Assembly (NCBI RefSeq): GCF_006345805.1
Contig: NC_043003.1
Location: forward strand, 100,254,001 to 100,318,000
Direction: 5' to 3'
Origin: Octopus sinensis
Taxonomy: Eukaryota
Length of the DNA: 64,000 bases
Below the pieces are notes generated by a model. That model searched no databases and had not been told where the DNA came from. It saw only the letters and a program-made list of their open reading frames with translations. Each line of letters opens with the position of its first letter. Position 1 is the first letter of the stretch. Shown here piece after piece: positions 3,579-60,639 of the stretch. A program made the position numbers and the translations under genes.

Positions 3579-4357
3579 GGATCTTTTCCTTTTGAACGGC
3601 ACATGTCAACACAATTTCTAGTTAACTAAACACTTTTAAACTTCGTATACTGGTAGAATGTGTTTATAAAACATCATTTTTTCTTGGCTTTATTGAGAAA
3701 ATTCTATAGTTTGTAAGATATTTCGTCTGAAATTTCGAGCATTTCGGCAATTTTAACCAATCGCTGACCTCCATTTGGGGTGAAAACATTCCGTGATGTA
3801 TGAATATGTCCATCGTTTAAGAAACAGATTGGGTTTATTTACATTTGCGAAGAAAAAAAGATACCCTTCCCCCACCCCTAACCCTAAATCTAAAATAGAT
3901 TGAAATGCAATAGATCGATACTAGGGTTATAATTATGGGTGACAATTTCATACAACACCGCTACGGAAAATGGGATTTTTTCCTAGCGGTGTCAAATGAA
4001 AATGTCACCCATAATTATAACCCTAGTATCGATCTATTGCATTTCAATCTATTTTAGATTTAGGGTTAGGGGTGGGGGAAGGGTATCTTTTTTTCTTCGC
4101 AAATGTAAATAAACCCAATCTGTTTCTTAAACGATGGACATATTCATACAGCACGGAATGTTTTCACCCCAAATGGTGGTCAGCGATTGGTTAAAATTGC
4201 CGAAATGCTCGAAATATCTTACAAACTATAGAATTTTCTCAATAAAGCCAAGAAAAAATGATGTTTTATAAACACATTCTACCAGTATACGAAGTTTAAA
4301 TGTGTTTAGTTAATCTAGAAATTGTATTGACATGTGCCGTTCAAAAGGAAAAGATCC
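3579..4357. repeat. Long palindrome: inverted dimer of a MITE-like element, arms ~390 bp
   Basis: ggatcttttccttttgaacggcac... mirrored by ...gtgccgttcaaaaggaaaagatcc, centre ~3973. Same family as the monomer at 6745-7150. Confidence 0.9.
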
Positions 4358-5410: not shown

Positions 5411-5774
5411 ACATCGTAAGGTGTACTAGCCATCTGAATGTGGCTAGCCACTTGGGGTGGGGTGTTACTGATGCTTTTAGCCCCAGGCGATCAACGTCAC
5501 CAGATGGACTTTAGACACAAAATTTCAGTGCCCTTGTGTTATTTGCAAAGGGAGGTCATCCTCCCTCGAAAACTTAAGTGATACATACTATAGTCCGTAT
5601 GTATCACTTAGGTTTTCGAGGGAGGATGACCTCCCTTTGCAAATAACACAAGGGCACTGAAATTTTGTGTCTAAAGTCCATCTGGTGACGTTGATCGCCT
5701 GGGGCTAAAAGCATCAGTAACACCCCACCCCCAGTGGCTAGCCACATTCAGATGGCTAGTACACCTTACGTTGT
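5411..5774. repeat. Near-perfect palindrome, arms ~178 bp, 8-nt loop (5589-5596)
   Basis: acatcgtaaggtgtactagcc...gatacatac / gtatgtatc...ggctagtacaccttacgttgt; only a few mismatches. Confidence 0.95.
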
Positions 5775-6744: not shown

Positions 6745-7150
6745 CCCTTTTCGGTTTGAACGGCAGTTTTTTAAAATAATTTCCACGTAACTAAACACTT
6801 CTAAACTTCGTATACTGGTAGAATGTGTTTATAAAACACCTTTTTCCCTTGGCTTTATTGAGAAAATTCTATAGTTTGTAAGATATTTGTTGTTTTTTCT
6901 TCAATTTCTGCAATTTCAACCAATCAATGACGTCTATTGAGGTGAAAACATTCTGTGCCGTATGAATATGTCCCTCGTTTAAGAAACAGATTGGGTTTAT
7001 TTACATTTCTGAAGAAAAAAGATACTCTTCTCCCCACCCCTAACCCTAAAACAGATTAAAATGCAATAGATCGATACTAGGGTCATAATTATGGGTGACA
7101 ATTTCATATGACACCGCTAGAAAAAACTGCTGTTCAAACCGAAAAGATCC
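6745..7150. mobile_element. MITE-like element with ~25-30-bp TIRs
   Basis: cttttcggtttgaacggcagtttt ... aaaactgctgttcaaaccgaaaag. Body matches the arms of 3579-4357. Confidence 0.75.
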
Positions 7151-9879: not shown

Positions 9880-12720
9880 ATAAAAAATACCTTAATCAAC
9901 AAAGCTGAGGCATCAAACCTACTGAGTCATGAGAAAAAAAGGAAATAAAGAAACAACTCACCACTTGGAACATATTAGTAAAGATTTAAACCTTTTATGC
10001 ACAGCACCAAACTCAATTTTCACAAACAAACTAGACAATGAACAATTCCTAATAAAGAAAACTCACAAGTCCATCTAACAAAAAGGAAAATCAAAAACAT
10101 TTGGAACACAGATCTTAGAAACAGAAAATTCGCATTCTGGAACATGCTTAAAGATTCCAACAAGGTAGAAATTTACAAACGCTGGATGAGTTCAATACCG
10201 AGAGTTCTCCCCAACAAACTGCAAATAAAAATCCCAAATGAACTTGATGAACAGAGAGAAGTGAGAGAAAGATTTGCATTATATCAAATAAAAATAGAAA
10301 GAGAACTTACTTAGATTAAGAGCATCGAACAATGAAGAAAAATACAAAATCATCGACAATGCACAGGGAACTGAATAAACATGCCAAATGGACAACCTCT
10401 TGAAAACATTTCTAAACTTTGGATAGAAACATGTGAAGCTGAAGAAAGAAATTCCCTTCAATGCTGAATTTTTCTTCCAAGGCTATGAATCAAACTTCAA
10501 AAAAACAATTTAATTTGGATGATCCCTTATGAAGACAGTAAAAAATAATCATAAATAATTGAACAGAGAACAAACCACCCTTAATTATGGATACATAAGA
10601 AAACAATGACACAGAACTAACCACTCACCAGGAAAAAAACGGTTTACACACTAGAAATAGGGATCACTCACAACATAAAAATACTAGATCCATGCTTCAA
10701 AGTTCCCAGCCAACCATAAGCCTTGGAAAAACACAAAATAATACTAGAAATAAGATTTTCGGCAAGCCAGAAACTTCAGAAAAAACTGCAGCACAGTTAC
10801 GAATTTTAATTACCAAACAGGAATGAAAAAGACATAAAGCACTGTACCCAATGGCAATCAAAGGACCCTAAGACATGAACACAGACAACAGGTCGATAGA
10901 GCAATATCATCACTCTTTTAACTCAAATTCCAACAGACACATCAACAACCCAAACGTTTTTTATCCCCAGACCAGAGAAACAGGGACACACATTGGCACA
11001 TAACACACAGGAAAAGCCAAAGGTAATTAACCTATTAACTCCTATCAATAACGAAGATCAATATACTCTCAAAGGGGCTAAAATTCACCCCAACTCCACA
11101 AAGACCCAACCAAAATTAAATTAAAAATAGTATAATGGAATTCTGCAGAAAACTAAGACTTACAGAAGCACTAGTTAACTCTAATATCGAAGATGATTCA
11201 CTATTTAAAAACAAAAGCAACCACATTACATACAAAGAAATAAAACACTCGATGAGTTCTGTAACCACGTTGAAAACTTCCCCTACACAAACAAAAAATT
11301 AACTCAAGCTTCAGCACTCCTCAGTGGAAGGAGTTAATTGAATTACAAAATGATGAGGTATTAACTATTCAAGAAGCCAATAAAGGGAGTGCAGTAGTAG
11401 TGATGGATGTGGACTACTACAAAAACCTAGTAGTATTCATACTGAATAATGAAGACTACAATCCCCAAAGAATAATGAAAAGCCTCTCGATATTAGTTCA
11501 ACTACATGGAAAAGGCTTGATGAAAAAAGAAATAAGCTACATAACTAACTTTAAATGTAAACCCAACCTCTTTTATGGCTTACTGAAAATTCATAAAAGC
11601 CATATTATAAATGAAGCAATTAAAAAATCACTGAAGTCATATACATACATGTACCAACACCAGGAGACCTTAAACTAAGGCCCATTATAGCTGGACCATC
11701 CTGTGAAATGCACCGACTGAGTTACTTCATTGACACCCTCTTGAAACCACTTCTAAAATATATTAAGTTACATTAGAGATGATTTGGACATGATAACTTC
11801 CCAGAAAGAGTAAAGGAAAAAACACTGTCTCTTTTGATGTTGTAAACCTGTATATTAATATCTCCCATAATTATGGATTAGAAGCAACTCAATTCAGGCT
11901 GGGAAAATATCCAGAAGAAATACCAGAACATATTAAAATTCATTCTCCAGCAAAATCACTTCATGTTTGACACTACTGTATACCAACAAAAATTTAGAGT
12001 TGTGATGGGAACCAAGGCAGCCCCCGTTCTTTCAAACCTGACAATGGGCTATTTGGAACTAACAGTATATCAGGAGTCACTCAAAAAATTCGGAAATACA
12101 TAAAGGGAAATTGGAAAAGATATTTGGATGACTGTTTCATTCTATGGAATGAGAACATGAAGAATCTTTTGGAATTCAAGACTCCTCAATAGCATAAATA
12201 CAATTCACAATGGAACACAAGAAAAGGAACGCTTTTTCTAGATATACTAACCAAAAAAAGTAAATAGAAACCAACATATTTTACAAAACTATAGACTTGA
12301 AACAATATTTATTATTTAGCTCATGCCACCCGAGACATATTAAAATAAATATCCCATTCAAAGTTGTTGTAATCGAGTTCTCTGGTGTTTTTTTTTTTCC
12401 CAACACTATAGTGCAGATTCTTTTCACTAGATTCATCATCATCATCATCATCATCGTTTAAAACGGACGCTAAACGATGATGATGAATCTAGTGAGAAGA
12501 ATCTGCACTATAGTGTTGGAAAAAAACACCAGAGAACTCGATTACAACAACTTAAAAACATACTTGTCAACAGACACTACCCAACTTCACTTATAGTTGA
12601 TGGGATAAAATGTGCATAAAGAATTAATATACGAACACTAAGAGAGGTCAAACAAAACTACTCACGCACTCTAAAGATATCATTCAACCTGCCAGAAATA
12701 GCTCTGAAATTTTTCCCGTA
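9880..12720 (+). mobile_element. Degenerate Penelope-like element (RT; 3' truncated)
   Basis: Frameshifted RT motifs: ANKGSAVVVMD, FDVVNLY, MGTKAAP, KRYLDDCF (~12118), SCHPRHIKINIPF/NLVRRICTIV. Left boundary uncertain. Confidence 0.85.
12361..12553. repeat. Fold-back palindrome with an RTE/SINE 3' tail at its centre
   Basis: Left arm 12361-12460 is the reverse complement of 12471-12553 (the (ATC)n tract is longer). Loop aaacggacgc. Confidence 0.95.
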
Positions 12721-14610: not shown

Positions 14611-16212
14611 ATGGCAAATAAGCTATGTAAAAGCCATGTTCACAAAGAAACTAAATATAAGAATAAAGATTTATTTTGTGACACCTTGAAAGATTCAAAA
14701 GAGAGACCATACCCATGTGGTATCTGTGGGAAGATGTTCATAAAAAGCAGTCACCTTACTGAACACAAACGTACTCACACTGGAGAGAAACCATACTGCT
14801 GTGACATTTGTGCAAAGACATTTGCAAGAGTTAGTAACTTAATTCAACATAAACTAATTCACACAGGCTCAAAACCTTATCCTTGTGAAATCTGTGGTAA
14901 AAGATTTACTACAAATAATTCATTGAACTCTCATAGACGTATTCACACAGGAGAGAAACCATACCACTGTGATATCTGTGGTAAAACCTTCACATCAAAT
15001 AGTACACTGTATTCTCATAAACGTATTCACACTGGTGAAGAACCATTTCATTGTGATATCTGTGGCAAAACATTCTCTGCAAGTGGAAATTTGACAGCTC
15101 ATAAACGTACTCACACTGGAGAGAGACCATGTTCTTGTGATATTTGTGGCAAAAAATTCACTTGCAATGGTGAACTAGCTCGTCACAAACGAAAACACAC
15201 TGGAGACAAGCCATATCATTGTGATATCTGTAACAAAAGATTCTCTCAGAGTAGTAATTTATACAGTCATGAGAGGATACACACAGGGGACCGGCCATAC
15301 CACTGTGGTATCTGTGGTAAAACATTCTCTGTGAGTGGTAGTTTATCTCGCCATAAACGTATCCACACTGGTGACAGGCCCTACTACTGTGATATCTGTG
15401 GTAAAACATTCACCGCAAGCGGTAGCTTATCTAGTCATAAACGTATTCACACTGGAGAAAAACCATACCATTGTGATGTTTGTGGGGAAACGTTCTCTCG
15501 AAAGAATGCATTAACTTGTCACCAACACCTCCATACAGGTAAGAAACCACATTGCTGTGATATCTGTGGTAAAACATTCTCTCTTACTAATCAGTTAACT
15601 CGTCACAAACAAACCCATGCTGGAAAGGGTGAGCATCACTGTGATATCTGTGGCAAAACGTTTTCAATGAATGCTCATTTATTTCGTCACAGTCGCGTTC
15701 ACACTGGAGAGAAACCATATCACTGTGATATTTGTGGTAAAACATTTGCTCAGAATGGTGAGTTATCCAGCCATATACGTGTACACACAGGAGACAGACC
15801 ATACCACTGCGATATTTGTGGTAAAACATTCTCTAAGAGTGGTAGTTTAATTTGTCACAAACGTATTCATACAGGAGAAAAACCATACCATTGTGATATC
15901 TGCAATAAAGCATTTTCCATAAGTAGTGAACTATCTTGTCATAAACGTATTCACACAGGAGATAGACCATATCATTGTGATGTTTGTGGTAAAACATTCT
16001 CTCAGAGGGGTAATCTGTCTTGTCATAAACGTGTACACACAGGAGATAGACCATACCAATGTAATGTTTGTAGTAAAACATTCTCTCAGAATGTTCACTT
16101 ATCTAGTCATAAATGGAAACACACTCGTGATAGACCATACCATTGTGATATCTGTGGAAAATCATTTTCTCAAAAAGGTAATTTAACTACTCACACACAA
16201 ATGCATACCTGA
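14611..16212 (+). CDS. C2H2 zinc-finger protein, 18 tandem fingers, no recognisable effector domain
   Basis: Uninterrupted ORF of C-x2-C-x12-H-x3-H repeats with TGE/DK/RPY linkers. First ATG at 14611 (track start 14602 is GTG). AATAAA at 16728-16733. Confidence 0.95.
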   Translation: MANKLCKSHVHKETKYKNKDLFCDTLKDSKERPYPCGICGKMFIKSSHLTEHKRTHTGEKPYCCDICAKTFARVSNLIQHKLIHTGSKPYPCEICGKRFTTNNSLNSHRRIHTGEKPYHCDICGKTFTSNSTLYSHKRIHTGEEPFHCDICGKTFSASGNLTAHKRTHTGERPCSCDICGKKFTCNGELARHKRKHTGDKPYHCDICNKRFSQSSNLYSHERIHTGDRPYHCGICGKTFSVSGSLSRHKRIHTGDRPYYCDICGKTFTASGSLSSHKRIHTGEKPYHCDVCGETFSRKNALTCHQHLHTGKKPHCCDICGKTFSLTNQLTRHKQTHAGKGEHHCDICGKTFSMNAHLFRHSRVHTGEKPYHCDICGKTFAQNGELSSHIRVHTGDRPYHCDICGKTFSKSGSLICHKRIHTGEKPYHCDICNKAFSISSELSCHKRIHTGDRPYHCDVCGKTFSQRGNLSCHKRVHTGDRPYQCNVCSKTFSQNVHLSSHKWKHTRDRPYHCDICGKSFSQKGNLTTHTQMHT

Positions 16213-18899: not shown

Positions 18900-19150
18900 T
18901 GAAATTGTAGTCATGGCAGATATTGGTGTCACGCAACTGGCATCCATGCCAGTGACACATAAAAGCACCCATTACTCTCTCAGAATGAATGGCATCCAGC
19001 CATAGAAACTATGTTAAATCAGACTGGACTCTGGTGCAGCCCTGGTTGAACTGTTCAACCCATGCCAACATGAACAATGGATGTTGAATGATGATGATGA
19101 TCATCATCATTTAATGTCCGTTTTCCATGCTGACATGAGTTGGACTGTTT
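18900..19150. mobile_element. RTE-tailed SINE (+) joined tail-to-tail to a short antisense copy
   Basis: ...gttgaatgatgatgatga|tcatcatcatttaatgtccgttttccatgc. Confidence 0.75.
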
Positions 19151-19439
19151 GACCACTGATTTTTGCTTGGGGGCTCTTGCTTTTATAACTATCCAGAAGG
19201 ATAGACATATCGTTGAGAACAATAGAAAATATATTTTATTTATTATTTATGTTTTAGTTTATGTCTATCACTGTTTGAGTTGCATAATAGTGGTTTTAGC
19301 TTTACTTTATATTATATATATATAATATAATATAATATTATATAAATATATATATATAATATAATATTATATATATATATATATATAATGTATGTATGTA
19401 TGTATATATTATTTATTTATTTATTTAATTGAACATGAT

Positions 19440-22261: not shown

Positions 22262-22391
22262 ATGGCTAATCGGACCGTGAAAGATGCTCACTCAGTTAAA
22301 GGAACTAATCCACAGTATTTAGTAGAGAAAATTATACGAACTAGGATTTATGAAAGTCGTTATTGGAAAGAAGAATGTTTTGCATTAACTG
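22262..22391 (+). CDS. PRPF38A: Pre-mRNA-splicing factor 38A, coding exon 1
   Basis: MANRTVKDAHSVKGTNPQYLVEKIIRTRIYESRYWKEECFALT, G|GTAATT donor, phase 1. Confidence 0.97.
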
Positions 22392-22807
22392 GTAATTTGA
22401 AACTCCGCTAAATACCTTTTGTATATTTATACGCAACTTATTGAAATGATTTTTATTCTGCAATGGGAACGAGCGTGATTTATGTTTGTCTCATTTAATA
22501 ATTTTCTGTGTTAAATATGAGGCCACAGTTCATGTAGGCGCAAGGACTAATTGTTATGACGTTCCTTTGTCAAAAATATTAGCAACCAAAGTTATGTGAA
22601 ATACATTTAAATGATTACCAAAACTTTTCGTGCGAATTCAGATCACCGCTCTCAACGGTGCCTGTCTCTATTGTTATTATACTTTTTTAAAATTATGTAA
22701 TTTCAATTTATGTAGCGTGTTTTTCTCCTTATATTTATTGAAGCAATGCGACGTTCGTCACGTATATTCTTCAGACCATGTTCAGTAGTTTTGCAAACTG
22801 TGTATAT

Positions 22808-24915: not shown

Positions 24916-25341
24916 CTAATATATCATTTAAAGGGACTTTGAAATCATCACCATCGGTTAACGTCTGTTTTCCATGCTGGCATGGGTTGGACGGTTTGAC
25001 TGAGGACTGGCAAGCCAGTAGGCTGCACCAGGCTCCAATTTTACCACGATTTCTACAGCTGGATGCCCTTCCTAACACCAACCACTCTGAGAGTGTGGTG
25101 GGTGCTTTTTACATGTCACTGGCACAGAAGCAAGCCAGTGACATGTAAAAAGCACCCACCACACTCTCAGAGTGGTTGGTGTTAGGAAGGGCATCCAGCT
25201 GTAGAAATCGTGGTAAAATTGGAGCCTGGTGCAGCCTACTGGCTTGCCAGTCCTCAGTCAAACCGTCCAACCCATGCCAGCATGGAAAACAGACATTAAC
25301 CGATGGTGATGATTTCAAAGTCCCTTTAAATGATATATTAG
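24916..25341. repeat. Fold-back palindrome of a 5'-truncated RTE-tailed SINE plus ~30 nt of flank; arms 208 bp, 10-nt loop
   Basis: Arms 24916-25123 and 25134-25341 are reverse complements with one mismatch seen (acgtc vs acatt). Confidence 0.97.
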
Positions 25342-28575: not shown

Positions 28576-29843
28576 TAAAAAAAAAAGTATATGATGGTCA
28601 GAAATGGAATGCTTTTGGCCACAGTTCTCTTCTGTCAGAACTAACGTTGAAGTTAATCAACTATAAAAACTTACATGATTAGTGTCTCTCATATTACAAG
28701 AAATATCAGAAATCATTTTACAGAAAGGTTTTTACTATATTAAAAAAATGGAATGATGCTTTTGATAATAAAATTGTAGATCCCACTAAAAAGATGGAAT
28801 GAACATAGTTGAACTGTCTTTGACCATGGGTCTACTTGATTATGTTTGACTTGGGGTGCTGAACAACTACAATCTGCTGGTCATGACCACTATCATGTTT
28901 GGAACTATCTCTACAATTTGATGATGTTGCTCAATACTAAGACATAGCAAAGTACATGCTAAGTGTTTACATATCCTCCTTATTATCATCATCATTGAAA
29001 TGTCAATTTCTTTATACTAGTATTGACAAGTCTTCTGTTCAATCTTGCGTCATCTGGACGTGTAGCTCGATATTTCTCAGTATCACGTCACTACTTTTAC
29101 CCCTTTTACTATTGGTTGCTCACATCATGTTTTCACTCAGCATTCATATCATACATCCATTGTTAGTTGGTTCATTTCTTACACATAGCGGGTATGTTTA
29201 TTGTCTGCTCATCTGCTCAGTATCTGATCATCTTTTTTCTCTAGCTTTCATGCAAATTAACATTACTCATTCAATGGATCCTACTTAACTATTTTCTCCA
29301 TCTAGAAATCTAATACATTTAACATCAAGTTTTGTTATTAAGCTGTGAGTCATACATCTTTCTTAAATTTTTGCATAGTGTAAGAAATCCTTTATTGCTA
29401 ACATATGCAACAACGTTTTGAAAGTCTTTAACTTCTTTTTACATTCTCTACTACATATTTTTTTCAACCACTTCCATCAGTAATGAACTCATCCCAGCAA
29501 CCACATACACATCATTGTTATTTAATTTCCCTGTTCCATACAAACATGCATTGGACAGTTTGATAGCATCTGATGGGCCCAAGTATTGCTCCAGTGTCTG
29601 CTATGATGTGGTTTCTGTAACTGGATGCCCTTTCCAATACCAACTGTTTTACAGTGTGCACAGAATGCTTGCTTTTTATATGGTACCAGCAGTTGTGAGG
29701 TTGCTATGCAGCTTGCAAGACTGCTAACACTGGAGGAGGCAGCCTTATGCTAGATGATGAGAGGGGTTTAGTAAAGAAATTGTTTTGTTTCCATTATGAG
29801 TGAGAGGTTTCAACTCAACTAATTTAATATTTATGTATTGCAG

Positions 29844-30003
29844 CAGAACTGATGGTTGACAAAGCAATGGAACTGAAGTATATTGGTGGAGTTTTTGGTG
29901 GAAACATTAAGCCAACACCGTTTTTATGTTTAGTATTGAAAATGTTACAGATTCAACCTGAGAAAGATATTGTTGTTGAATTCATCAGAAATGAAGATTT
30001 CAA
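29844..30003 (+). CDS. PRPF38A: PRPF38A coding exon 2
   Basis: (A)ELMVDKAMELKYIGGVFGGNIKPTPFLCLVLKMLQIQPEKDIVVEFIRNEDF(K); ttgCAG acceptor, GTAAGT donor; phases match exons 1 and 3. Confidence 0.97.
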
Positions 30004-32143
30004 GTAAGTAAAAACAAGCAGTTTCTGTTGGTGGACAACAATGAGCCTATAAAGAGGCCTAAATGTTGTGGCTCAGATCTACTAATCTTGCATTGGATAA
30101 GTTAATCCTTGATTAACTATTCTTGTAAACAAGTTGTGTCACATTTGGAACACTTCTGATCTGGTCTGGTCAATCAAAGTTTGCCTAAAGATAAAAGCAA
30201 CTACTATTACTATTGTGGGGCCAACAAGGAAATCTCTACATGATTGATCAATCTGTTAGAAATAACTGTCAGGTCCCCATAAAATCACATTCTGTAGGGC
30301 TGACCTGAAGGTGAAAAAAACTATTATCTTTCTTCAACGATGGGTTCTGCATAAAACAAAACTTTTCTTATTAGTCATTGTTTGATCTTTTTCTTTTTTT
30401 TTTCTCCATCATATAACTATTTCTGGTTATCTTAATTCTTCTTTTCTTTCTCAAATCACACTGTATCATCTTAAAGTGGAAAGGACACATTAGATAAAAT
30501 AGCCCTCAGTAGTCTGTCTAAAGATAAAACAAAGTCAAGGTTGGTACCTATAATCAGATCTGGCTCAAGAGTCAGATAAGAATTTGTTTCAAAAATTAAC
30601 GTAGTTATGTCCCCTTATCTTGCCTAATAAATTAGTGAAGCTATTTTGTAACAAATGAAAATAAAAAAAAACCTTTTTCCTCATTAGTTAATGGATTAAC
30701 AGTAAAGCAAAGAGAATTCTTTGATCTCAATTTCTGTTCATTAAAAATGAATTTTAAAACTATTTCTTGCCTTAACTTCCTCTAAAAACTCAGTAACCTC
30801 ATTAAGTGAAAAATTTAAAACCCTCCTTCTCCTCTACATGTCTAAACTATTTAGATGTTTGTGTTTGTTTCTTTATTTAGTCTCCCTGTTGGCAGGATGG
30901 AGGTATGTGGTCTATCACCCGAAATTCTATGGATATAAGCAAAAAAAATCAATCTTAAATTCTGTTACATTATCTTGGTTTACTGTGATTTTCTATCATA
31001 TCAATCTTTCATCATCATTAAGATGTGAGGTCAATCAGATGCAAAGCAGGATTATAATTAATTTGTTGTGCTGTTTTCCTGTAACACTCTCCCAGAGTTG
31101 ATAAAATGCCCACTCACTGTAGTCACCCTTATGCACCCTACATTTATCCCTTCACTGTTCCTACACCTTGCATATCATTCCCCTACTTCAGATCTATACT
31201 TCCCGAGCTATTATCTCTCCCACCTTATGTCTCTCCATACTGATATTTCCTATTAGCCACACCTCCACTCTTGTTCATCAGTCACTACATTCACCTCTAC
31301 CCCCATTGCTATGCATCTGTTACTCTCCCCTTACACTCTTATAAAAGCAACCACTCTCTCCTTCCCTCCCATGAAACACTGTCCATATCCTCACTTACAC
31401 TCACCTTCTTGTACCTTGGGAGTTTGCTTTGGAATTCCATCACTGCCTTCTTTTACCTTCTTCCCAATTACTCCCACTTGCCCCTATATAATGTGAGGTA
31501 ACTCTCTCTCTCTCTACACACACACATATATATATATATATACTACTACTACTAAAACTCTGTGATTGCTTGCTTGTGTGCATGCTTGTTTGTAATTTAA
31601 TTCAGCCAAACTGGTGCATAATGGGAAAATATTCTGAAAGTAAGGTACCCCTGAAATGTGAAAACAAACAGAATAAAACGAGTTTCGTGTAAATCGGACC
31701 ATGGATTCCCAAAATACGTGGTTTTTTGGGGGGGTACCTTCATAAATAGCCAGAATGGCACATAATGGGAATATACTTCAAAAGTAACATAACCTTGAAA
31801 TGGGAATATAAAATACTGTGAAAATGGTTTCATTAATTTTATGTTTACGTTATATTACAATTCCTTTTGCATTTTTGTAGATGTATGCACATATGCCATA
31901 AATAAATGCTGTTACTGGAGTTCAAGTTTATCCTGGAAGTTCTGTTTCTATTAGATGCTGTAAATAATCAATAAAACCTTAAATATGAACTTGTAAACCA
32001 GAAATATTTAACTGAATCATCATAAAATTAACTTTCATTTCAATACAAGATTGAAATCAGCTTCCATTCTTCATAACCTGAACTGTCAGTGACCCAATGG
32101 TTCATGGGTAGTCTACTATATATATATATATATATATATATAT

Positions 32144-32314: not shown

Positions 32315-34301
32315 CTAGCTTAAGGTGACCAGCTCTACGCACGGGTAAGAGTGTGGTTGTTACTTTCTGTTGCTTCCTTTCAGCATGTAAAAAGCACCAT
32401 CCGAACGTGGCCGATTGCAGCGCCACCTTGACTGGCTTCTGTGCCGGGGGCATGTAAAAAGCACCAACCGATCGTAGCCGCTGCCAGCCCCCCTGGCACC
32501 TGTGCTGGTGGCACGAAAAAAGCACCCACTACACTCACAGAGTGGTTGGCGTTAGGAAGGGCATCCACCTGTAGAAACACTGCCGGATCAGACTGGAGCC
32601 TGGTGCAGCCTCCTGGCTTCCCAGACCCCGGTCAAACTGTCCAACCCGTGTTAGCACGGAAAACGGACGTTAAACGATGATGATGATTCTCCCTCTTTGT
32701 TTCTCTCTCCTTTCTCTCTCACTTTCTCACTCTCTTACTTTTCTTTTCTCTCGGACTCTCCCTCGCTTTCTCTTACTCTCTATCTTTATCTATCTCTCTC
32801 CCATTTATAAACAACAAAAGATCTTGAGTAAGTTGAGAAATAAAATATTTTGAAAGATCAATCATAAATATCAGGCAGTGACAACGGAAAGGTCTGCTTC
32901 AAGGCAGACAGCAAAACACTAACATTTAAAAGGGACAGACGAACTTGCGAGCTGAATAAAAATAATAAAATATTGGAAACCAAAGTTTGAAGGGATAGAA
33001 TCTGAGGATAGTAGAGTCACCCTGGCTGGCATTTCTTAACGACGGACAGCAACGTATTGACAGTTTAACGGCTGGCGTAAAATTTTGAACTTGATGTAAA
33101 AGAAAATTCCTAAACACCAAGTTTTGAAGTGATTGTTTCTTACGACAGTAGACTCACGATGGCAAGCATTCAAAACTTCTTCGTCATGGACGGCAACACA
33201 TTGGCGGTTAAAAGGCTGGCGCAAATTTTTTAGCTTGATGTAACAGAGAATTCCTAAACACCCACTCCTTTAAATTTTAATCCCCTTCCAGTCCCATTTA
33301 GACCCCTTTTCACATTTTGGTTAATATAACCCGATTTCATTCGGGTCTACTGGGGCCAAATTTTACAAGATGAGGAATTTTGTCCAGCACTTTTAACATA
33401 GGTGTGCATATTTTCAGCTCAACCGACCACATAATGCACACATTATATATATATGTATGTATATATATGTGTGTGTGTGTGTGTGCGCACGCATTATATA
33501 TACAAATGTATACAATTTATATATATATGTATAAATTAAATTAGAGATAAAACCACTAATAGGCAAATCAAACAGTGAAAAACATAAACCAAAACAAAAA
33601 TTAAAATATAATATACAAAATATATAAAATATAAAATTGAAAAATTTAAATTATTTATATTTAAAATTAAAATTATTAATTTATATTTATAATTTTAAAA
33701 AAAATATATATAACTATCGAACAGTATTAAAAAGTTTAATATGCATAAATACAGATATATACACTTTGTATATATACATTATATATACATATTTATATAT
33801 AGAACACACACACATATATAAATTAACCCAATAAATATCTGATTCATAAATTTGTTCTCATGATTGTGTGGTGGTGGTGGTGCTGGTGGCGATGATAATT
33901 CCCTCTATGAATGCAGCGCTGTCGAAGGCGGGGAGGGGGGAGATATAGAACGCCGTGACACGACGTTATAAAGAGAAAGTGAAGGTAAGAGAGTTAGACG
34001 CCATGAAACGACGTTATATATAGAAAGTGATGGGAAGGGAAGAAAGAGAGTGAGTGACGGAGGAAGACAGATGCATAAAAATATGAGAGTAGACTTGTCA
34101 AAGTGCGCTTTTGGCCCTAGCAACGACACCTTTTAAGATGGGGATTTCTAACCTAGCCCACTAACATCCTCACCTCATTTTACATGTCCCTGTAAAATTT
34201 TGGAGTCAATCCGACGGGATCTAGTGGCCTTTAACCCGTTCTCAATGCCAAAACCAGACAAACAAACAAACTTTTCGCATTTCAGATTTATAATATAGAG
34301 A
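32315..34301 (-). mobile_element. Non-autonomous Helitron
   Basis: Minus strand begins A|TCTCTATATTATAAATC (34301) and ends with a GC-rich subterminal segment plus CTAG|T (32318-32315): canonical TC...CTAG termini in an AT target. Confidence 0.7.
32380..32690 (+). mobile_element. RTE-tailed SINE nested in the Helitron
   Basis: Internal ~65-bp repeats (aaaagcacc...) and 3' tail aaaacggacgttaaacgatgatgatga. Confidence 0.85.
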
Positions 34302-35779: not shown

Positions 35780-36111
35780 AAAATTATTTACATCAAAAAC
35801 GTGCTTTTTTCTATGAAAATCCTTATTTTTTTACGATTTTTTCACTGCTGTGTTGCCACTTTTCGGTGTATTTCAACCAGAAAAATGTTCACTTGAAGAG
35901 AATAACAAGCTACATAATGCAAAATTTTTACGACCCGCTGGAATTGGAATTTTTGAAAAGTAAAAATTTTGCATTATGTAACTTGTTATTCTCTTCAAGT
36001 GAAAATTTTTCTGGTTGAAATACACCGAAAAGTGGCGACACAGCAGTGAAAAAATCGTAAAAAAATAGGTATTTTCATAGAAAAAAGCACGTTTTTGATG
36101 TAAATAATTTT
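35780..36111. repeat. Fold-back palindrome, arms ~152 bp, 28-nt loop
   Basis: aaaattatttacatcaaaaacgtgc...aaaatttttac / gtaaaaatttt...gcacgtttttgatgtaaataatttt; about 5 mismatches. Confidence 0.93.
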
Positions 36112-37281: not shown

Positions 37282-37467
37282 TATATTTATTTATTTATTT
37301 CTGTAAGAGTTACAGGTTGGGAAGCCAACCAACTAAGGGATAGTACCTATCCAATATAGTGCTGGTAGTGTGCCCAATTATTAATACCCAAGTGCTAGTT
37401 ATTGCGTGACAATTTCGCAATCGAGTGTCATTTATGAGCAGGGGTAAAAAGTGGTTTACCCTTAATT

Positions 37468-37707
37468 TATATGGCAAAAAGAAAATGGAGAGGATGCAAA
37501 AATAACATACATCAGCTGATAGACATTCTGCTATGTCTATTTATTCCAAAACAAAAGGGAGTATTATAAGAATACATACACATGCAATGACTGTGTGCTG
37601 CACAGATCTTTTACTCCTTTATGTATTGGAATAAATAGACATAGTAGAATGTCTACTGGCTGATGTATGTCATTTTTGTATATCCTCCATTTTCTTTTTG
37701 CCATATA
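37468..37707. repeat. Older, diverged palindrome, arms ~95 bp, ~48-nt spacer
   Basis: tatatggcaaaaagaaaatggag...gggagta / tactccttt...ctccattttctttttgccatata. Confidence 0.85.
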
Positions 37708-39629
37708 TATATATAGCAAGACATCTGTGCTGTACCATACTTTAGCTTTTCAACACCTGACATAAAGCCACTACCCTCTCAAATCTATCTCCCTTTTTAG
37801 TTGCAGGAGCTTTTTCCTTTTCTGTTTTTTCCCCGTTTTCTGTTTTGCAAGTTACTTGGCAACCACACTAATATCAATGGTACGAAAAAAAAGCACCCAG
37901 CACACATTGTATTCTGGTTAGCATTTGGAAGGGTGTTCAGCCACAGAAATTATGTCAGAGCTGACACTGGAACTTGGCACAGCCCTCCAGCTTGGCAGAT
38001 GATGTTGTTGATGATATTACATCCCTTGTTAAACTTAGAGGAAATGTTTTTCTACACTTGGATACCTTCACTACAACTACTATTATTACTGCCACCACCA
38101 CTGAATTATAAATTCAGATAAAAATTTTCTTACATAAAGAATATAGGTTAACAGTGTCATTGTATAATACCCATAGAGTATATTTGGGAATTTTTATTGC
38201 ATAAAAACAATCTTATCCAGTATGCCAAGTACATGTATATACTGTGTAAAATAGAGGTTTATGAGTCCAATGTCACCTCAAGTGTATGTATGTATATATG
38301 TGTGTGTGTGTGTACATACACACATGGAACCTGGTAATAACCAGATTAAGGTATTATTTAAAAACCAGAGAACATATATTTCAAAACTTAGACACATAAT
38401 AACCCAAGTTATGCAGGCTGGCTGTGATAGGTGCAGACATCGTTGTATGGTTAAGAAGTCCACTTTGCAACCACATGCTTTCAAGTTCAGTTTCATGTAC
38501 TGCACCTTGGACATTTGTCTTCTGTTTCAGTCTTGGCTTTCTGAGTGAATTTGGTCAGTGGAAACTGTAGGAAGCCAAAAGTTGACAATGACATCAACAT
38601 TTCTGCTTTCATCAGACTGCTTTACTTGAGTACTTTTTTGGTTTTATATATTCTTATTTAGTAAGTTGGATCTTTTTGTGGGTGGGGGTAGCCATGTGAA
38701 AGATAATTAAGTGTGGTGTATGTAGACAGGGGAAGTAGTTGTGTAGGAAGTGGGTGTAGCAGAAGGTGTGAGTTGATAGAAAGTTATGATGAGAAGACTT
38801 ATTTCAATTTGATGTAGGAATTTTGTTATTGTTGAGGGTTTTGGCTGTCACTGCCAACTTTTTCCTTGTAAAAGTTTATATGTACTCTACTAAGGGTATT
38901 GAATAATCCTTCAGTTTGTTGTTTTTATATATAACTTGACATAGAAGCAAACATTTAATTCTGTGTGAACATGTGTATATGCTTCCTTGAAAATTGAGAG
39001 CTCGTGGATTTACTTGAATGAAACTGAACGATGTTTATATTTCTTGTTGACATTATAACTAGTTGCTTTTTGCTTTTAAAGATTTATGAAATAAAAATAA
39101 ATCTCATACTTGAAATCCAAGTAAAGAGTTTGACAGGAAGATTATCTGGCTGTAAAATCCTGGCTCAAGTACACCCCTCATCCAGTCTTGGCTTGCATGC
39201 AAAATTGGTGTCAAGTAAATGGAGGCTTGAACCAAGAGATCATTGTTCCAGCTTGTTCATTTCAAGGCTATTTTACCATTTATTCAGTTAGGGACAAAAG
39301 GCCATTAAACATGCTCAAAAATTTCCATAGGCCATCACCAAACATCACCATCATCGTTTAACGTGATCTGAAATCATTGGAAGATTAAATAACACAGTTC
39401 AACTAGGAACTGAGTCCACACCATTGGCATTTATCTTGCCACCATAACTATGCTATAGTGCTAATATTCTAGAGTAATTCAATATGACACTCTGTTGCTT
39501 CTATCATTAATGTTTCTTTAGTAAAATATGAAACTTTGATGATTCCTCTCAGTTCCAAGCATTTATAGAGAAAGAAGAGTACAGTTGATTGTATGATAAA
39601 TTCTATAAGGATTTAGTACCACCAAACTG

Positions 39630-39810: not shown

Positions 39811-40155
39811 GTGCAAGTTCAGTTTTGCAGTAGATTGAAACTCTTGCACTGTACTAAATCTTATTGACTCCAGAAGGATGAAAGACAAGACTGACCCTCA
39901 AAAGTATTGAAGAGTGAAATTAAAAACTGTTATAGGAGATTTACATAATAGAGTATATGATGTAATGAATTCTGTATGTCAGTAAAACTAAAAATATATT
40001 TTAAAATGGTTCTACATTTATACTGATATTCCACGGTCTCAGCCTTCTCACTTCTAAAGGTTTTAATTGAACTAATTAATTTATTTATTTTATAGATTGT
40101 CTGATGATGAATTGTCTCTACTTGAACCACTTTTACTTTGCTATTTTGTCTTTAG

Positions 40156-40277
40156 ATATGTGCGTGCCCTAGGAGCAATGTATATGAGACTTGTTGGAAC
40201 ATCTTTAGACTGCTTCAAATATCTGGAGCCTTTGTATAACGATTACAGGAAGTTGAGGAGACAAAATAAATCTGGAG
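40156..40277 (+). CDS. PRPF38A: PRPF38A coding exon 3
   Basis: YVRALGAMYMRLVGTSLDCFKYLEPLYNDYRKLRRQNKSG; tttAG / GTAAGA; phases match. Confidence 0.97.
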
Positions 40278-44859: not shown

Positions 44860-47800
44860 AGTTCAACTGCATCATGCACAGATGTAGCGGTGGGGAGAGA
44901 TATAGGATAGTAAAAGAGGGTGAGAAATGGGGAGAGTGAGAGAGGGTATGTGTCTGTGTATCTGAAAGGAGTGTCAATGGAAAAGAGAAGGAAAGAAAGA
45001 AGGAAGAGAGAAGAAAAAATGCGTTTACATCTTTACAGCTGGTCATCTTTATTCACAAACCAAAAACCCGCTCTTTACACTGCCAAACCCCCTAATAAAC
45101 TGACACACACAATATGAAATACGACCATCGACCCAAAACCCCACAAAGACAGCAAGACAAACACGACTCATACAACCAACAACCTATAACACTTGGAGAG
45201 AACAAACAGAATATGAACAACCACCAACACATAACGCTGGACATTCTAAATGGATACACACATGGAGCAATAGACAAGTAGATATAAATCAACACATAAC
45301 CTACAACAAACATTGAGGAAATCCAAACCATACAAACATCAACCCCAAGCGACCCAACAAATTTGCAAGATGGATAGAAAACAACCTCCACTATCAAAAC
45401 AATACAAACACACAATATGAACCATTCAACTACCCACAAAGAAACCTGAATCCCAGGAATGGAAATTGGCCCAACAAACACAGAAGATGGGAAGAAAACA
45501 ACTACCACAGACAAAACAACCCATACAGACCATATAGACCACTCCTACCTCTACAAGAAAATCCAAGACCTGAAAATGGAATTTGGAGACGCAACAACAC
45601 AACCCCTTTTTTAGGGAAAGGATACTTCAACCATACTCCAGACCCAACACACCAAAAATTCCGAATGAACGCTCAAAGCACATAGACGCCAAAATATTAA
45701 ACCTATCTAAAAGAGAACTTAGCGAAAATGAAATGAACCTACTACTAAAAGGCCTCAAATTTACACCCACACCCACTCCAAATCTCATAGAACTAAAAAC
45801 TGATATAGACAACTTTAGCTGCTGCCTCTGCCTTATGGAATTCTTTGAAAATAAGGAAACAGAAGATAGCTCAATCAGAAGAAAACAATCCCATTTCACC
45901 CCTTACAAGGGAAGTGACAAACACCTAGACTCATACATAGAGACAATTTCCAAATTCCCTCTCAACACACATAAATGCAAACAGAGAAAGCAACATTAAA
46001 AAAAATTGGAACATTAGTTGATGAATACCAGGACTCTTTTACAGACAAGGAGAAAGACTATTTATGCAACTCAAGAACCAAAGAAAGCAACTTTTATGGA
46101 TTACCTAAAGTTCATAAAAGCTCTGAAATACTGAGAGCCATAAAGGAACAGAGGAACCATTATATAAGAATACAAAGACCTGAAGACCTCACAATGAGAC
46201 CAATAGTAGCAAGGCCCCAGGCGCCGACACAGCAACTAAGCCACTTCATAGATATACTCATCAAACTTTTATGCTCACTGATACCAAGCTACATAAGGGG
46301 TGACATAGACTTCCTCACACACATTCCAAATATGGTTCCGGAAAACACCATACTTGCAAGCTTATACACAAACTTATACACAAACATACCACACACCCTG
46401 GATCTGGAAGCGATAAAACAATGGGTAGAAAGATACAGGGCACTCATAGATAAACGTTTCAAAATAGACTTTATCACCAAAGCCACCCAATTAATTCTTG
46501 AAGAAAACACATTCTCATTTAACAAGACATACTGACAGATAAAGGGCACGGCTATGGGTACAAAATTTGCATCGTCATATGCCAACTTAGTGATGGGTTT
46601 CCTTGAGAACAAACTATATAAGATGAAATAGGGAAAGTCTTTGAACACGACTTCAGAGAAGACATCAAGAAAAAGTGGAAATGCTACCTCGATGACTGTT
46701 TTATCTTTTGAAACAGTTCAGAAGAAGATCTACGAACATTCCACAACATCCTCAACATACTGCACCCATCTATTAACTTCATGATAGATACCAGCCACAA
46801 CAAACTTCCCTTCCTAGACATCAACATCAAGATACATAACTCCATCGTCACAACAGACATCTACTACTACAAAACACCGACACACACCAATATTTAAATT
46901 TCTACTCCTGCCACCCATCCCACATAAAAAGAAACATTCCATATAGTATTGCAAGACACATATGCAACTTAGTGACCGACTCACAAACATGCCAAATGAA
47001 CTTAAAAACTTCCAACTAGAACAGAAATACCCACTCAAATTAATAAAAAATGGAATCTCAAAGAGCAATGAAACTGGACATCACACAACTCAGAACTCCA
47101 AAAACGAAAAACAAAGAAAACATCATTCCTTTCATAAACACACACAACCCTGGAGTAACCAACATGTTTCAAATAATACATCCAAACTTACAAATAGTCC
47201 TACAAAGCCTCAAAATGGGAAACATATTAAACAGATATTGCATAAAAAACAGTAAACGCCAAGAGAAAAACCTGAAGAAACAACTAATAGGGCAAAATTC
47301 TCATCAGAAACTAAAACTGAATTCTTTGTAAACGAGTGTGGAGATGGTAGATGTGGGATCTGCAGTAACCCCATCTATAAATATATAGGGGGAAACAAAC
47401 AAATAAAATTTAAGAGTGGTCACACATTCAAAGTAAATGCAGACATGAATTGCAAGCCGCAGAACGTAATATACTGCATAACCTGCCCCACATGCAAGGA
47501 GAATTATATAGGCGAAACTGGAAATTCTTTATGCCAATGAATCAGAATTCACCGACAACATATCCGACAGGAGAAACTGCGAAAGATTCCACTGAGTAAA
47601 CACTTAGATACATGTGGAGAATGAAAATTTAAGACCTTTCCCTTCTATGAATGTCCAAGGAATGACACCTTCTTCAGAAAAAAATATGGAAAAATACTTC
47701 ATAACAAAGTTCTCCCCCAAACTGAATGGCTGAAAATATTTCTGTAATGATTTGTACTGGATTAAGGACTAATTTTGTAAAGTAAATTGTATTAAACACA

Positions 47801-48748: not shown

Positions 48749-50083
48749 ATAGAAGGAAAGATCCAGAGAAGGGAAGACAGAGGGAAGAAAAATCGCCAAC
48801 GGTACACACTAGGTCACATTGTATATTTATGTATATATAGGTATATAATATATATGCATATATAGGTATATAATATTTATATGTATATATGTATATATCA
48901 CAGCTGCATCCTCGTTACACAAGAAAGGCCTTTGCCAAGAAGACTTACTGAAATGAATCATGATTGTTGCCATGTGGATGCCCTTATATGACTTTTAAGC
49001 CCGGCCAAGCTTTTATATATATATATATACATGTATATGTGTGTGTGTGCAGCTGTGTACATATGTATATACATAATATATATGTTATGTATGTGAGGTA
49101 TATATGAGATAATAGTTTCAGTATTAATAGCAAAACTATTAAATTGTCTTGTCAAAAAGTGATGGATGGATTTCCATTTGACCTCCGGCCTGAGCTGTGT
49201 TACTGAAGATTCAGCTGGACAGCAGGTGACCTAGATAAGTAGAAACTACTCCTATGCATCTATTCTACTACTCTAGGATGACTGTTATAAATACGGTTTC
49301 CTTAGGCACAAGATAAGCAGTCAGCTTGCAACAGCCAACAGAGAGCCACTTAGCGAACAATGATAGCCAATGACACAACACAGTAGCAGAACACAAACAG
49401 ACAGAATAGAAAAGCAACATGACCCTACCAAATGACCAACGCATACACAGACACAAAATATGCCATGTATTTTCTCATCAAATCAACATTCTACTTCTGT
49501 TGTTTTTTTTTTACTTTGCCAACTTGAAGCAGTTGGTAACTTTATGTAGCAGCCTTCATTGATATTGTAAATCAAACTTTGTGTATCCAAAATGTAAATG
49601 CAAGTGTTGATCAAGTGAATTATTTAAACTATATTCTGATGCTTTCCTCATTGTCCTTTGATGTTGTCCAGCATGCCTTTCTCCATCTGCTACACCCGAC
49701 AACGTACACTTAATTATCAACAAAACCTTTTGCTACCTATCCCATTACAAATCTATCCAATGCAGTTGAGGGTATGAAAAAGAAGTAGTGAGATGAAGAG
49801 TTGAAGGATGTTGAGCCTCTTTAACATGATGATACAGGATTTTAAAATCAAATTGTGTAAAGCACCATCATTTAACTCATCTTTTTTTTCTCTTTTTATA
49901 AAGTTGAAGTAAAGTTGATGAGACAACACTGGCAACTTGGTTTTGTCACTCACAGTTTTAACTTCAAATACCTTCATATTACAATAGCAATTAGAACCAA
50001 ATTGAGAAAAATTTTATTTCCCATATTTCATATCATTTATTTTTATTTCTTGTTCATTTAAATTTCATTTTATATTTTATTAG

Positions 50084-50169
50084 AATTTGAAATTGTGCAC
50101 ATGGATGAATTCATAGATGAACTTTTGAGAGAAGAGAGAATTTATGACATTATTTTGCCCCGCATTCAG
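50084..50169 (+). CDS. PRPF38A: PRPF38A coding exon 4
   Basis: (E)FEIVHMDEFIDELLREERIYDIILPRIQ; ttattAG / GTAATC. Confidence 0.97.
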
Positions 50170-50330: not shown

Positions 50331-51229
50331 TATCATCACTAGTGAAGTTGTTATGCAGCCTGAAAGACTAGAATCTTCTTTGACTAAGTAGAGCTACAGT
50401 AGGGACCTAAACGGTTTTATGCTATGGAATGAGGGACTAAAGTGTGAGTGAAGGGGCCAGAACAAAACAGGTTTCTTGCTTCTGAGAAGGTATATGGCTA
50501 CTCACATTATAGAAGAGAGGGTGAAGTGCCTGAGATGGATCTGGAAAGAGATGAAAATATAGCTTCTTGATAAATAATTAAAGTCTAAATATCATCATTG
50601 TTTTTCATCCACATTTCTTTGCTTGCATGAGTTAGATGGAATTTATTAAGGCAGATTTTCTGCAGTCAAATGCCCTTCATGCTGTCAATTCACAGCTGTT
50701 TCCCCATAGCCAGAAGATTAGAAATAAGGACACCACTTCTATGACAAGGACACTCATTTTTAACTGTTGTGCAATGTCAAGGCAAGAAGGCACACACATA
50801 TATGTATATATATGTAATGGAGTTCTTTCAGTTTTAGTCTCCTATATCCACTCTTATGAATTTCATCAACTGGAGGCCATAATAGAAGAGACACTTGTTC
50901 AAGTATCATGCAGAGAGACTGAAGCAAAAACCATGTGGCAGTGGAAATCTTTTATCTTGTTTCAGTCATTAGACTGTAGCCATACTGGGGCCCTACCTTG
51001 AAGAATTTTAGTTGAATGAATTGATCCCAGTACTTATTTTTTTTAAAGTACTGGTACTTATTCTATTGGTGCAAACTTATCTAACTCTTTAGCATTTAAT
51101 CTGGTCATATCTGGCCCAAATATTCCACCCACTAATATCCTTCTAAAATTAAACCATTGCATCATTGAAGTCTCAAAACTACAAGTTAATACATGATTAA
51201 TTCAAAACAATGAATAAATATGCATAACA

Positions 51230-54200
51230 TCATCATCGTTTAACATCCGTTTTCCATGCTAGCATGGGTTGGATGGTTTGACCGGGGTGTGGGAAGCCAG
51301 GAGGCTGTGCCAGGCTCCAGTCTGATCTGGCAGTGTTTCTACAGCTGGATGCCCTTCCTAACACCAACCACTCCAAGAGTGTAGTGGGTGCTTTTTACAT
51401 GCCACCGACACGGGTATCATAACTTCAATTTCCATTTGATTTTTACTTTGATGTTGATGTTGACATACTTGACTCAATAGGTCTCCTCAAGTACAGCAGG
51501 TCACTCTACAACCCAAGGTTAGCACAGCAGGTTGTCCTGCGAGCCATGAACTCACTTCATTTGTCAGGTCTTCACAGTCACAGCATATCTCCAGGGGTCT
51601 TGGTCTTTTGTCATAGGCTCTGTGAGGCCCAGCGTTCAAAGGTCATGCTTGACCACCTCGTCCCATGTCATCCTGGGTCTACCTCTTTTAGAGTGGCACT
51701 TCTTCACATATTTCTCCTCATCCATCCGTAGTACATGACCATACCAACGCAAACGTCACTCCTGCATGCTGCATCCGATGCTTCTTATGTCCAACATTTC
51801 TTTCAGGGCACTTACACTCTGTTGTGCATGGACACTGACATTACTCATCCAGTGGATCATGCTAGCTTCATTTCTTTCGAGCTTACACATGTCCTCCATA
51901 GTCACAGACCATGTTTCACTGCCATGAAGCATGGCATTTCACACACATGCGTCGTGCAATCTACCTTTCACTCTGAGCAAGAGACCCTTTGTTGCCAGTA
52001 GGGGATAAAGCTTTCTAAACTTTGCCCAGGCTATTCTTATTCTGGTGGTAACACTCTCTGAGCATCCACCCCCACTACAAACTTGGTCACCTAGGTAGTG
52101 GAAACTATCAACTACTTTGAGTTTATCCCTCTGGAGTGTAATGGAATCTGTTTTCTGTGTATCTGTGGTGTCTATTGCCCCTGTGCATCTGCCACACACG
52201 AAAGCTATCTTCTCGATTAATTTTCCTTTGATGTTGCTGCACATCTTATGGAGTTTCTACCTACACATTTTCTACAGATTGAGCAGGGCCACCTACCTAA
52301 GGGGGTGTGTGGTGAGTTTGCCTTCCTACTTACTAGAACTTTGGTCTTTGCTACTCTAAGGCCTTTTGATTCTAAACCTAGCTTCCACACCCGAAATTTC
52401 TTTTCTAGTTCTGGTAGTGATTCTGCTATGAGGGCCAGGTCATCCACATAGAGAAGTTCCTAGAGGCAACCCGTTATTCCTCTGTTATTGCCTGGAGGAC
52501 TATGATGAATAAAAGGGAACTGAGGGCTGAACCTTGGTGGACGCCTACTTCTACCAGGAATTCTTCACTATACTCATTGCCAATCCTAACCTTACTAACA
52601 GCCTCTCTGTAAAGGGCCTGTACAGCCCTTATTAACCATTCGTCAATCTCCAGTTTCTGCATCGCCCACCAGATAAGGGATCAGGGGACCCTGTCAAAGG
52701 CTTTCTCCAAGTTCACAAAAGCTAAGTATAGGGGTTTATCTTTAGCTAGGTATTTCTCCTGCAGTTGTCGAACCAGGAATATGGCATCAGTGGTGCTTCT
52801 ACCCGGAACAAAACCGAACTGCATCTCATCTAAGCAGACTCTCTCCCTAATGAGATGGGCTATGACCCTCTCCGTGACCTGCATCACCTGATCCAGCAGT
52901 TTGATACCCCTGTAGTTATTTCTATCTAGAGCATCACCTTTACCTTTGTAGCAGTTGACTATGGTGCTGCTACGCCAGTCATTGGGTATGACTCCATTAT
53001 GAACTACCTAGTTTACAATGCAGCTGACTAGGCCATAGCCCACATAGCCAGCTGTTTTAAGCATCTCAGCATTGATTCCTGATGGGCCGGAGGCTTTACC
53101 TGGTTTCATACCCTTAATTGCCTTAACTACAAAGGAGCTGTCTATTCGGATGGCTGGTCCTTCTTCTGGGTCAAAATTTGGCAGGCTCTCCTCCTCCCAT
53201 TCATTCTCCACATTCAGCAGTCTTTCATAATGGCTTCTCCAAGCCTCTTTCTTTTCAGAATCATTAAAAGCAAGTGCCCCATCATTCATTCAGACACATT
53301 TCTCTCCTATGACATCGTAATTTTCTCTCACACACTGTCTTGCAATCTGAAATACCTCAGTTCTTTGGTCCTCACATCGCTAGACATTGGCAAACTTCTT
53401 TTCCGCTTCGCTCTTGGCTATGTATACCTGCCACCCAGCCTCCCTTTTGGCTACCTTGTACAGTTCCCTGCTACCCCCATCCTTCCAGGCTTTCCAGGCC
53501 TGTTTCTTTGCTCTAATGGCCTTGTCTACTGTACTATTCCACCACCACGTAACTCTAGGTCTGGAAGGGACTTTGCACCAGCCACAGACTTGGTCTGTGG
53601 CACTCAGCAAGCTGTACCGTAGGAATTTACAGCTACCTTCTATGTCCGATGTCTGTAGCTCCTCCCTCTCCTCAAATTTCTTGATGAGGATGTCCCTAAA
53701 TCTCTGACCATGTGAAGGGTTCTTTAGCTTCCAAATACTTTTCTGGATTGGTCTGCTTCTTGGTATCCTTCTGGCCTCGAGCCTAAAGTCACTAATGACT
53801 AGCCTATGCTTGGAGGTACATTCTTCACCCGGCAGGGTCTTTGTATTTAAAAGCAACCCTGCGTCCCGCTGTCTGGTGAGGATGAAATCAATCTGGCTAG
53901 CAGAGTCCCCTGATTGATAGGTTATCAGGTGGCTGTCTGGCTTCCTGAAGTTAGTGTTGCAGATTAAAAGGTTACATGCATCACAGAATTCCAATAGCCT
54001 GGTTCCCTCATCGTTTCAGGTGCCAATACCATGGCCACCGTGTACTCCAGTGAAGATACCCGATTCCTGCCTGACATGCCCATTAAAGTCTCCAGCCACA
54101 AAGATGAGGTCACTGCTACTCGTCTTTCAGGTAGCCTGTAGAAGGGTATCATAAAAGTGGTCCTTCTGATCATTTGGTAGCCCCACATGTGGGGTGTAGG

Positions 54201-56456: not shown

Positions 56457-56558
56457 AAAAGGAGTGTGCTAGAAGATACGAATCAATTAGAACCACGAAT
56501 AAGTGCTTTAGAGGAAGACATTGAAGATGTAGAGTCTTCAGAAGAAGAAGAAATTATT
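56457..56558 (+). CDS. PRPF38A: PRPF38A coding exon 5
   Basis: KRSVLEDTNQLEPRISALEEDIEDVESSEEEEII; ttcacAG / GTAAGT; phase 0. Confidence 0.96.
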
Positions 56559-60610: not shown

Positions 60611-60639
60611 ATGTGGAAATGGCATGAGAGCAAGGGAGT

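Follow-up and report, generated by a model that had tools for sequence, protein, structure and literature searches.

So-called snap-back 5' junctions are a described class of products of target-primed reverse transcription (TPRT) by R2 proteins in human cells, known from the PRINT studies (PMC11371274, PMC11331408); in these junctions, reverse-complemented element or target sequence is fused to upstream DNA. For L1, insertions with an inverted duplication of adjacent DNA and 2-bp homology have been reported (bioRxiv 10.1101/2024.12.14.628481). Here we describe a 126-nt insert in a 64,000-nt stretch of the Octopus sinensis genome (the window, whose position 1 corresponds to CM016865.1:100,254,001 in GCA_006345805.1). 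The insert interrupts a decayed Penelope-like reverse transcriptase (RT) pseudogene and very probably stems from the aborted retrotransposition of an RTE-type long interspersed element (LINE) or of a short interspersed element (SINE), in which the cDNA snapped back and copied itself together with about 67 nt of host DNA. As snap-back 5' junctions had already been published in the two R2 studies, the mechanism is less new than an earlier note on this DNA had implied, and the octopus insert is a natural example of a mishap already known for R2 and L1. What is new is the germline, RTE-type, cephalopod case, where the polarity follows from an interrupted reading frame, which also demonstrates integration that is exact to the base. 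A term search of an octopus repeat-annotation paper returned no mention of palindromes or hairpins (PMC13282606).

The insert has the sequence features of an R2 snap-back junction, namely a sense 3' end joined to the target, and reverse-complemented cDNA and target sequence ahead of the upstream DNA. The settings differ, since the PRINT products were made by engineered proteins at ribosomal DNA in cultured cells and were detected in reads, whereas the octopus insert appears as a germline-fixed product of an RTE-type LINE/SINE pair. Its proportions differ as well: the cDNA amounts to only about 25 nt, return synthesis went about 67 nt past the nick, and there is no target duplication. The L1 cases share with it an inverted genomic duplication beside a TPRT insertion and a small hairpin, with priming on 2-bp microhomology in L1, but in most of them it is the reciprocal end that is duplicated, and the proposed cause is remodelling of resected break ends by the host. 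Snap-back insertions by polymerase theta and by group II intron-like RTs (PMC11761039) are alike in that a 3' end folds on 0-2 nt of homology and copies its own strand; they differ in starting from double-strand breaks, in lacking an RNA-templated segment and in usually being much shorter.

The host of the insert lies at about 11040-12703 on the plus strand, where three-frame translation reveals a decayed Penelope-like RT pseudogene. Its conceptual translation matches relatives from Octopus sinensis, O. vulgaris, O. bimaculoides, Argonauta and bivalves (best E = 8e-58), and in the alignment it has the RT block SCHP..K.NIP..LARRICTIV that is typical of Penelope-like RTs. The homologs carry PF00078/PF26215, and many of the relatives also a GIY-YIG domain (PF01541). 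A GIY-YIG region was not detected in the window copy, in which homology ends near 12703, so that this copy is a truncated or decayed fragment of a Penelope-like element. Upstream of the insert (11040-12360, plus strand) the pseudogene contains several frameshifts and stops, and ends with …SCHPRHIKINIPF plus the first base of an N codon; the rest of the RT homology (..VNRHYPTSLIVDGIKCA..) follows at 12554-12703 on the same strand.

The reading frame defines the site before insertion. The frame NIPF|NLVRRICTIV, which had been read across the interruption in the earlier note, is borne out by the three-frame translation and by the relatives, all 13 of which cover the breakpoint without a gap (SCHP.H.K.NIP[FY]NLARRICTIV). 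Alignment to intact relatives, which had been proposed as the check, thus confirms the empty site, and none of the 13 carries the inverted segment. When intact relatives were compared with the window DNA by tblastn, a gap of 42 codons (126 nt) appeared exactly at the breakpoint. A second Penelope-like pseudogene in the window (45583-47025, plus strand, about 40% amino acid identity to the first) is without the insert, and its breakpoint region (46840-47025) reads NIPYSIARHIC, ungapped. The gap-free relatives and the exact tblastn gap together define an insert of 126 nt, or 42 codons, with neither duplication nor deletion of the target, and a predicted pre-insertion sequence of …CCATTCAATCTAGTG…. 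The last base of the F codon in …KINIPF is 12359. Because the a at 12360 and the a at 12486 are interchangeable, the breakpoint is ambiguous by 1 nt, and the junction 12360|12487 proposed previously is a valid placement, albeit one of two equivalent ones.

The insert and the flank that it copies form a near-perfect palindrome at 12361-12553. Folded as single-stranded DNA, this segment reaches -86.6 kcal/mol, compared to -18.5 +/- 3.2 kcal/mol for 200 shuffles (z = -21.6). The left outer arm (12361-12433) corresponds to the native downstream flank (12486-12553) in reverse complement, and the left inner arm (12434-12460), (CAT)7CGTTTA, is a reverse-complement copy of a retrotransposon tail. The loop of 10 nt (12461-12470, plus strand), AAACGGACGC, is RTE/SINE sequence in sense and runs on into the sense tail. 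The right inner arm (12471-12485, plus strand), TAAACG(ATG)3, is the sense 3' tail of an RTE-type LINE/SINE and adjoins the native flank, and the right outer arm (12486-12553, plus strand) is native Penelope-like coding sequence, NLVRRICTIVLEKNTRELDYNNL, with consensus and frame kept. This anatomy agrees with the parts that had been named before (a reverse complement of about 67 nt of flank, an inverted tail and a sense tail of about 25 nt). The target DNA inside the arms amounts to 67-68 nt.

The arms differ in three respects: T11CCC on the left stands against T7CC (the complement of A7 and GG) on the right, the left (CAT)7 has 7 trinucleotide units and the right (ATG)3 only 3, and there is a single substitution. 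The run lengths had originally been counted slightly differently; the T run is 11. Of the proposal that (ATC)n tracts differ between the arms through slippage or age rather than a read artefact, the difference itself is evident, but the lengths alone leave room for a long-read consensus error. The length differences can be explained by slippage during return synthesis, by later microsatellite or homopolymer mutation, or by consensus error.

Which arm is the original can be told from the coding sequence. In the right arm, the RR of the family consensus is retained, as is the reading frame (LEKNTRE). The left arm, translated from the minus strand, gives NLVKRICTIVLGKKK (MMMMMMMNLVKRICTIVLGKKKTPENS), with an R-to-K change and with a frameshift from the longer homopolymer. 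The right arm has the ancestral states and the left arm the derived ones, and therefore the right arm is the template and the left arm the copy; translation thus indicates a native right arm and a reverse-complement copy on the left, which is the polarity assigned previously. The native arm is also the one that is continuous with the loop.

The tail at the apex can be traced to a repeat family of the same window. Loop and inner right stem together correspond to the final 27-31 nt or so of the repeat, with 29/31 identities to 32660-32690 (E = 1e-7 within the window), and the loop agrees in sense with the SINE consensus AAACGGACGT. The junction TAAACG(ATG)3 | AATCTAG at 12485|12486 is of the same type as about 12 canonical tails in the window, which end in …TAAA[CT]GATGATGATG and are followed by flank that mostly starts with A. 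As reference we used the longest SINE-like copy with this tail (32330-32690, plus strand, …GGAAAACGGACGTTAAACGATGATGATGA). SINE positions 54-354 match 58043-57743, directly 3' of the open reading frames (ORFs) of a LINE copy at 57743-60700 on the minus strand. This copy has endonuclease-like and RT-like ORFs, shares its 3' 300 nt or so and the tail with the SINE, and represents the source family. The tail of the LINE/SINE pair is (GATG)/(GAT)n, with no poly(A). Because LINE and SINE share a 3' end and have a short tandem-repeat tail instead of poly(A), we assign the tail to an RTE-type LINE/SINE pair. RTE LINEs have been reported to be active in octopus (PMC9115989). The sense tail abuts the native arm, a polarity that would result if reverse transcription was primed by the 3' OH of the target bottom strand. 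A tail-only fragment of about 20 nt at 39346-39364 (minus strand, ACGTTAAACGATGATGGTG) indicates that extreme 5' truncation without snap-back occurs in the same family.

Together, these data suggest a model for the origin of the insert. Read along the minus strand, the order is native bottom strand, cDNA of the last 25 or so nucleotides of the RNA, 10-nt turn, cDNA copy, target copy of about 67 nt, and upstream DNA. An RTE-type endonuclease would have nicked the bottom strand of the resident Penelope-like pseudogene, at a position between 12359/12360 and 12486/12487, and reverse transcription of the RNA of an RTE-type LINE or SINE would then have started at its (GAUG)n-type tail, with the bottom-strand 3' OH as primer. 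After only about 25 nt, the cDNA would have left the RNA, and its 3'-terminal T may have found a partner in an A of the same strand, 11 nt upstream, so that a loop of 10 nt formed; the loop at 12461-12470 accordingly marks the 3' end of the RNA-templated cDNA. A polymerase, either the element RT or a host enzyme, would have extended the self-primed end and copied the nascent cDNA, with slippage from 3 to 7 repeat units, then crossed the original nick and continued for about 67 nt on the target bottom strand, with homopolymer slippage and one misincorporation. The new 3' end would finally have been joined directly to the upstream DNA, without microhomology, and second-strand synthesis would have fixed the 126-nt insert. 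The architecture, the exact empty site, the choice of native arm, the identity and polarity of the tail, the absence of target duplication and deletion, and the recurrence at other RTE/SINE 5' ends are read directly from the sequences. From the product we infer the order of the enzymatic steps, the polymerase of the return strand and the fate of the top strand, which may have been displaced or resected.

Several observations weigh against this model. The complementarity for starting the fold-back is 1 nt only. Target duplications seem to accompany canonical copies of the family (about 8-9 nt at 51228-51406, and (TA)n in an O. vulgaris copy described below), and their absence from the insert is not predicted by the simple model. 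For 67 nt of duplex target to be copied, strand displacement or prior resection would be needed, neither of which is visible in the sequence. The putative RTE-clade label of the LINE is taken from the tail type and the shared 3' end, and the allele and its age depend on a single assembly.

Among other explanations, the one that we take most seriously, while still considering it improbable, involves two events: an ordinary tail-only insertion of about 25 nt, and a later, unrelated inverted duplication (by replication template switch or by polymerase-theta-type snap-back in break repair) that came to be centred there by chance. Tail-only insertions of about 20 nt do exist (39346-39364), host remodelling of break ends has been invoked for flanking inverted duplications at L1 sites, and the sequence does not fix the polymerase of the return strand. 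The turn, however, lies exactly at the cDNA 3' end, and does so likewise in two other independent RTE/SINE copies, with loops of 10-11 nt. Moreover, the tail offers no pre-existing inverted repeat that could nucleate a later event, and the outer end of the copy joins precisely at the position of the original nick. Less probable again is a local palindromic consensus error of assembly or sequencing. The O. sinensis assembly was built from PacBio and Hi-C data, the arms differ chiefly in homopolymer and microsatellite length, as is typical of long-read errors, and exact look-ups of three short junction-spanning ORFs yielded no independent contig on record. On the other hand, read fold-back chimeras do not have colinear unique flanks on both sides, while here the frame is taken up again exactly; the 3' end of a retrotransposon stands at the apex, which makes biological sense and has the correct polarity, and the same architecture is found in an independent O. 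vulgaris assembly. The exact resumption of the frame on both sides and the recurrence in an independent assembly make a read-level artefact unlikely.

Two explanations that invoke known element types are, in our judgment, highly implausible. Foldback transposons and miniature inverted-repeat transposable elements (MITEs) are abundant in this genome, have long arms, a short loop and a strong hairpin like the insert, and the window contains other short-loop palindromes, including a MITE foldback dimer at 3579-4357. Terminal repeats, an 8-bp target duplication and further copies mark such transposons, whereas the insert has none of these: its empty site is codon-exact, its centre is an RTE/SINE tail, neither its arms nor the 193-nt unit as a whole has another copy in the 127 kb examined (the window and three further stretches, L002-L004), and its right arm is host coding sequence that the Penelope-like frame needs. 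The other is L1-style twin priming, in which the top-strand 3' end primes internally on the RNA and an inverted 5' segment results. Inverted 5' parts of LINE insertions are classically explained in this way (reference 47 of PMC11371274), and the route has in common with the insert that a truncated non-LTR insertion has an inverted segment on its 5' side. Twin priming, however, inverts a different, more 5' part of the element, so that its two segments are not a palindrome and contain no flank copy, and it cannot yield an in-register copy of the downstream target. The anatomy contradicts it, as each arm is the complement of the other and 67-68 nt of target are part of them.

Snap-back of RTE/SINE cDNA, as preferred here, is not confined to this site. 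The window contains a second case at 24916-25341 on the minus strand, which consists of a SINE 3' part of about 180 nt plus 28 nt of flank, in 208-nt arms with one mismatch. Its 10-nt loop (25124-25133) is SINE-sense on the minus strand, where it reads TTGCTTCTGT and continues the SINE consensus (…GGCTTCTGTGCC…) into the left arm; the element therefore lies in minus orientation, with the left arm as its primary cDNA. The logic by which the earlier note had oriented both loops holds here on the opposite strand. Up to 6-7 nt at this turn could be natural self-complementarity of the SINE. Homology to a hAT-type transposase ends at GSTY (24909), about 6 nt before the palindrome, and the homologs continue …GSTY-[FC]CEQ[LF]FS.MKNIK.., a continuation that was found under neither of the two candidate empty sites. 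As the coding test failed, polarity at this site follows from the orientation of the loop only. The hairpin sits in intron 1 of PRPF38A.

A third case, which supports the suspicion of a recurrent mechanism, comes from O. vulgaris (L002:13268-13348 in OX597819.1, GCA_951406725.2). It is located at the 5' end of a 5'-truncated copy, 1.46 kb long, of the same LINE (L002:11857-13348), with 91.6% identity to window 57743-59167. At the turn, the arms are 34 nt long, the LINE sequence runs on into a loop of 11 nt, and terminal complementarity amounts to 1 nt. The copy lies in a (TA)n tract that is present on both sides, and after the turn the sequence runs into the (TA)n flank. Among the 14 copies with a bona fide 3' end in the 127 kb, which come from three octopus assemblies, 3 have a snap-back turn at the 5' end, with loops of 10, 10 and 11 nt; this is a small sample with a wide interval, and the random control is heavy-tailed from (TA)n and other palindromes. 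We put forward only tentatively the broader possibility that cDNA snap-back is a frequent germline outcome of RTE/SINE retrotransposition in octopus (about 1 in 5), with an enzyme-set loop of 10-11 nt on 1 nt of homology or little more, that return synthesis can enter host DNA and integrate without target duplication, and that hairpins are thereby mass-produced in genes and introns.

We considered whether every short-loop palindrome in the window might be a snap-back, and rejected this. The palindrome at 3579-4357 is an inverted foldback dimer (6-nt loop) of a MITE of about 390 nt with 20-bp terminal repeats (CTTTTCGGTTTGAACGGCAG), which is also present as a monomer at 6747-7125; an 8-bp duplication (CATTCGTT) on either side of the dimer suggests a hAT-type element. 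At 19043-19155, two SINE tails stand tail-to-tail, (GATG)n|(CATC)n, with 77% complementarity. A snap-back would place the tails outside rather than at the centre, and so this palindrome does not belong to the class; it looks as if one copy had inserted independently into the tail repeat of the other. Palindromes at 5411-5774, 35780-36111 and 37465-37710 have arms of 178, 152 and 99 nt and loops of 8, 28 and 48 nt, respectively, with no RTE tail and no other copy in the 127 kb. The arm of about 147 nt of yet another O. sinensis palindrome (L004:5130-5417) has a single-copy counterpart (91%) in O. vulgaris, at an unrelated locus (L002:13484-13630); this is another repeat family that exists as monomer and inverted dimer. 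Since the palindromes are heterogeneous, we count only those with an RTE/SINE 5' end at the apex as snap-backs.

Two neighbouring genes deserve mention. PRPF38A has plus-strand exons within 22262-56519, at 22262-22399, 29837-30013, 40151-40276, 50083-50163 and 56436-56519. In a word-indexed search of a 5.8-billion-protein set with these exons, no cephalopod orthologue was among the best 120 matches, which is odd. An intact C2H2 zinc-finger ORF of 533 amino acids (14611-16212, plus strand) lies 2 kb downstream of the hairpin in the Penelope-like pseudogene and is an annotated gene in GCA_006345805.1. A homolog search with this ORF, made to reach the orthologous locus, gave matches dominated by vertebrate zinc-finger proteins.

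The insert is a natural record of a TPRT side reaction that has so far been documented mainly in engineered R2 and in L1 systems, and it indicates that synthesis of the return strand can go on across the nick and copy host DNA. If the whole genome showed the frequency of about 20% seen in the 127 kb, long perfect hairpins would arise systematically from RTE/SINE activity in cephalopod genomes. This would matter for repeat annotation, as such hairpins resemble MITEs and foldbacks, for genome stability and for the supply of double-stranded RNA. The octopus lineage is known for extreme RNA editing, and hairpins of this kind in genes and introns would be ready double-stranded RNA, and thus candidate ADAR substrates or fragile sites.

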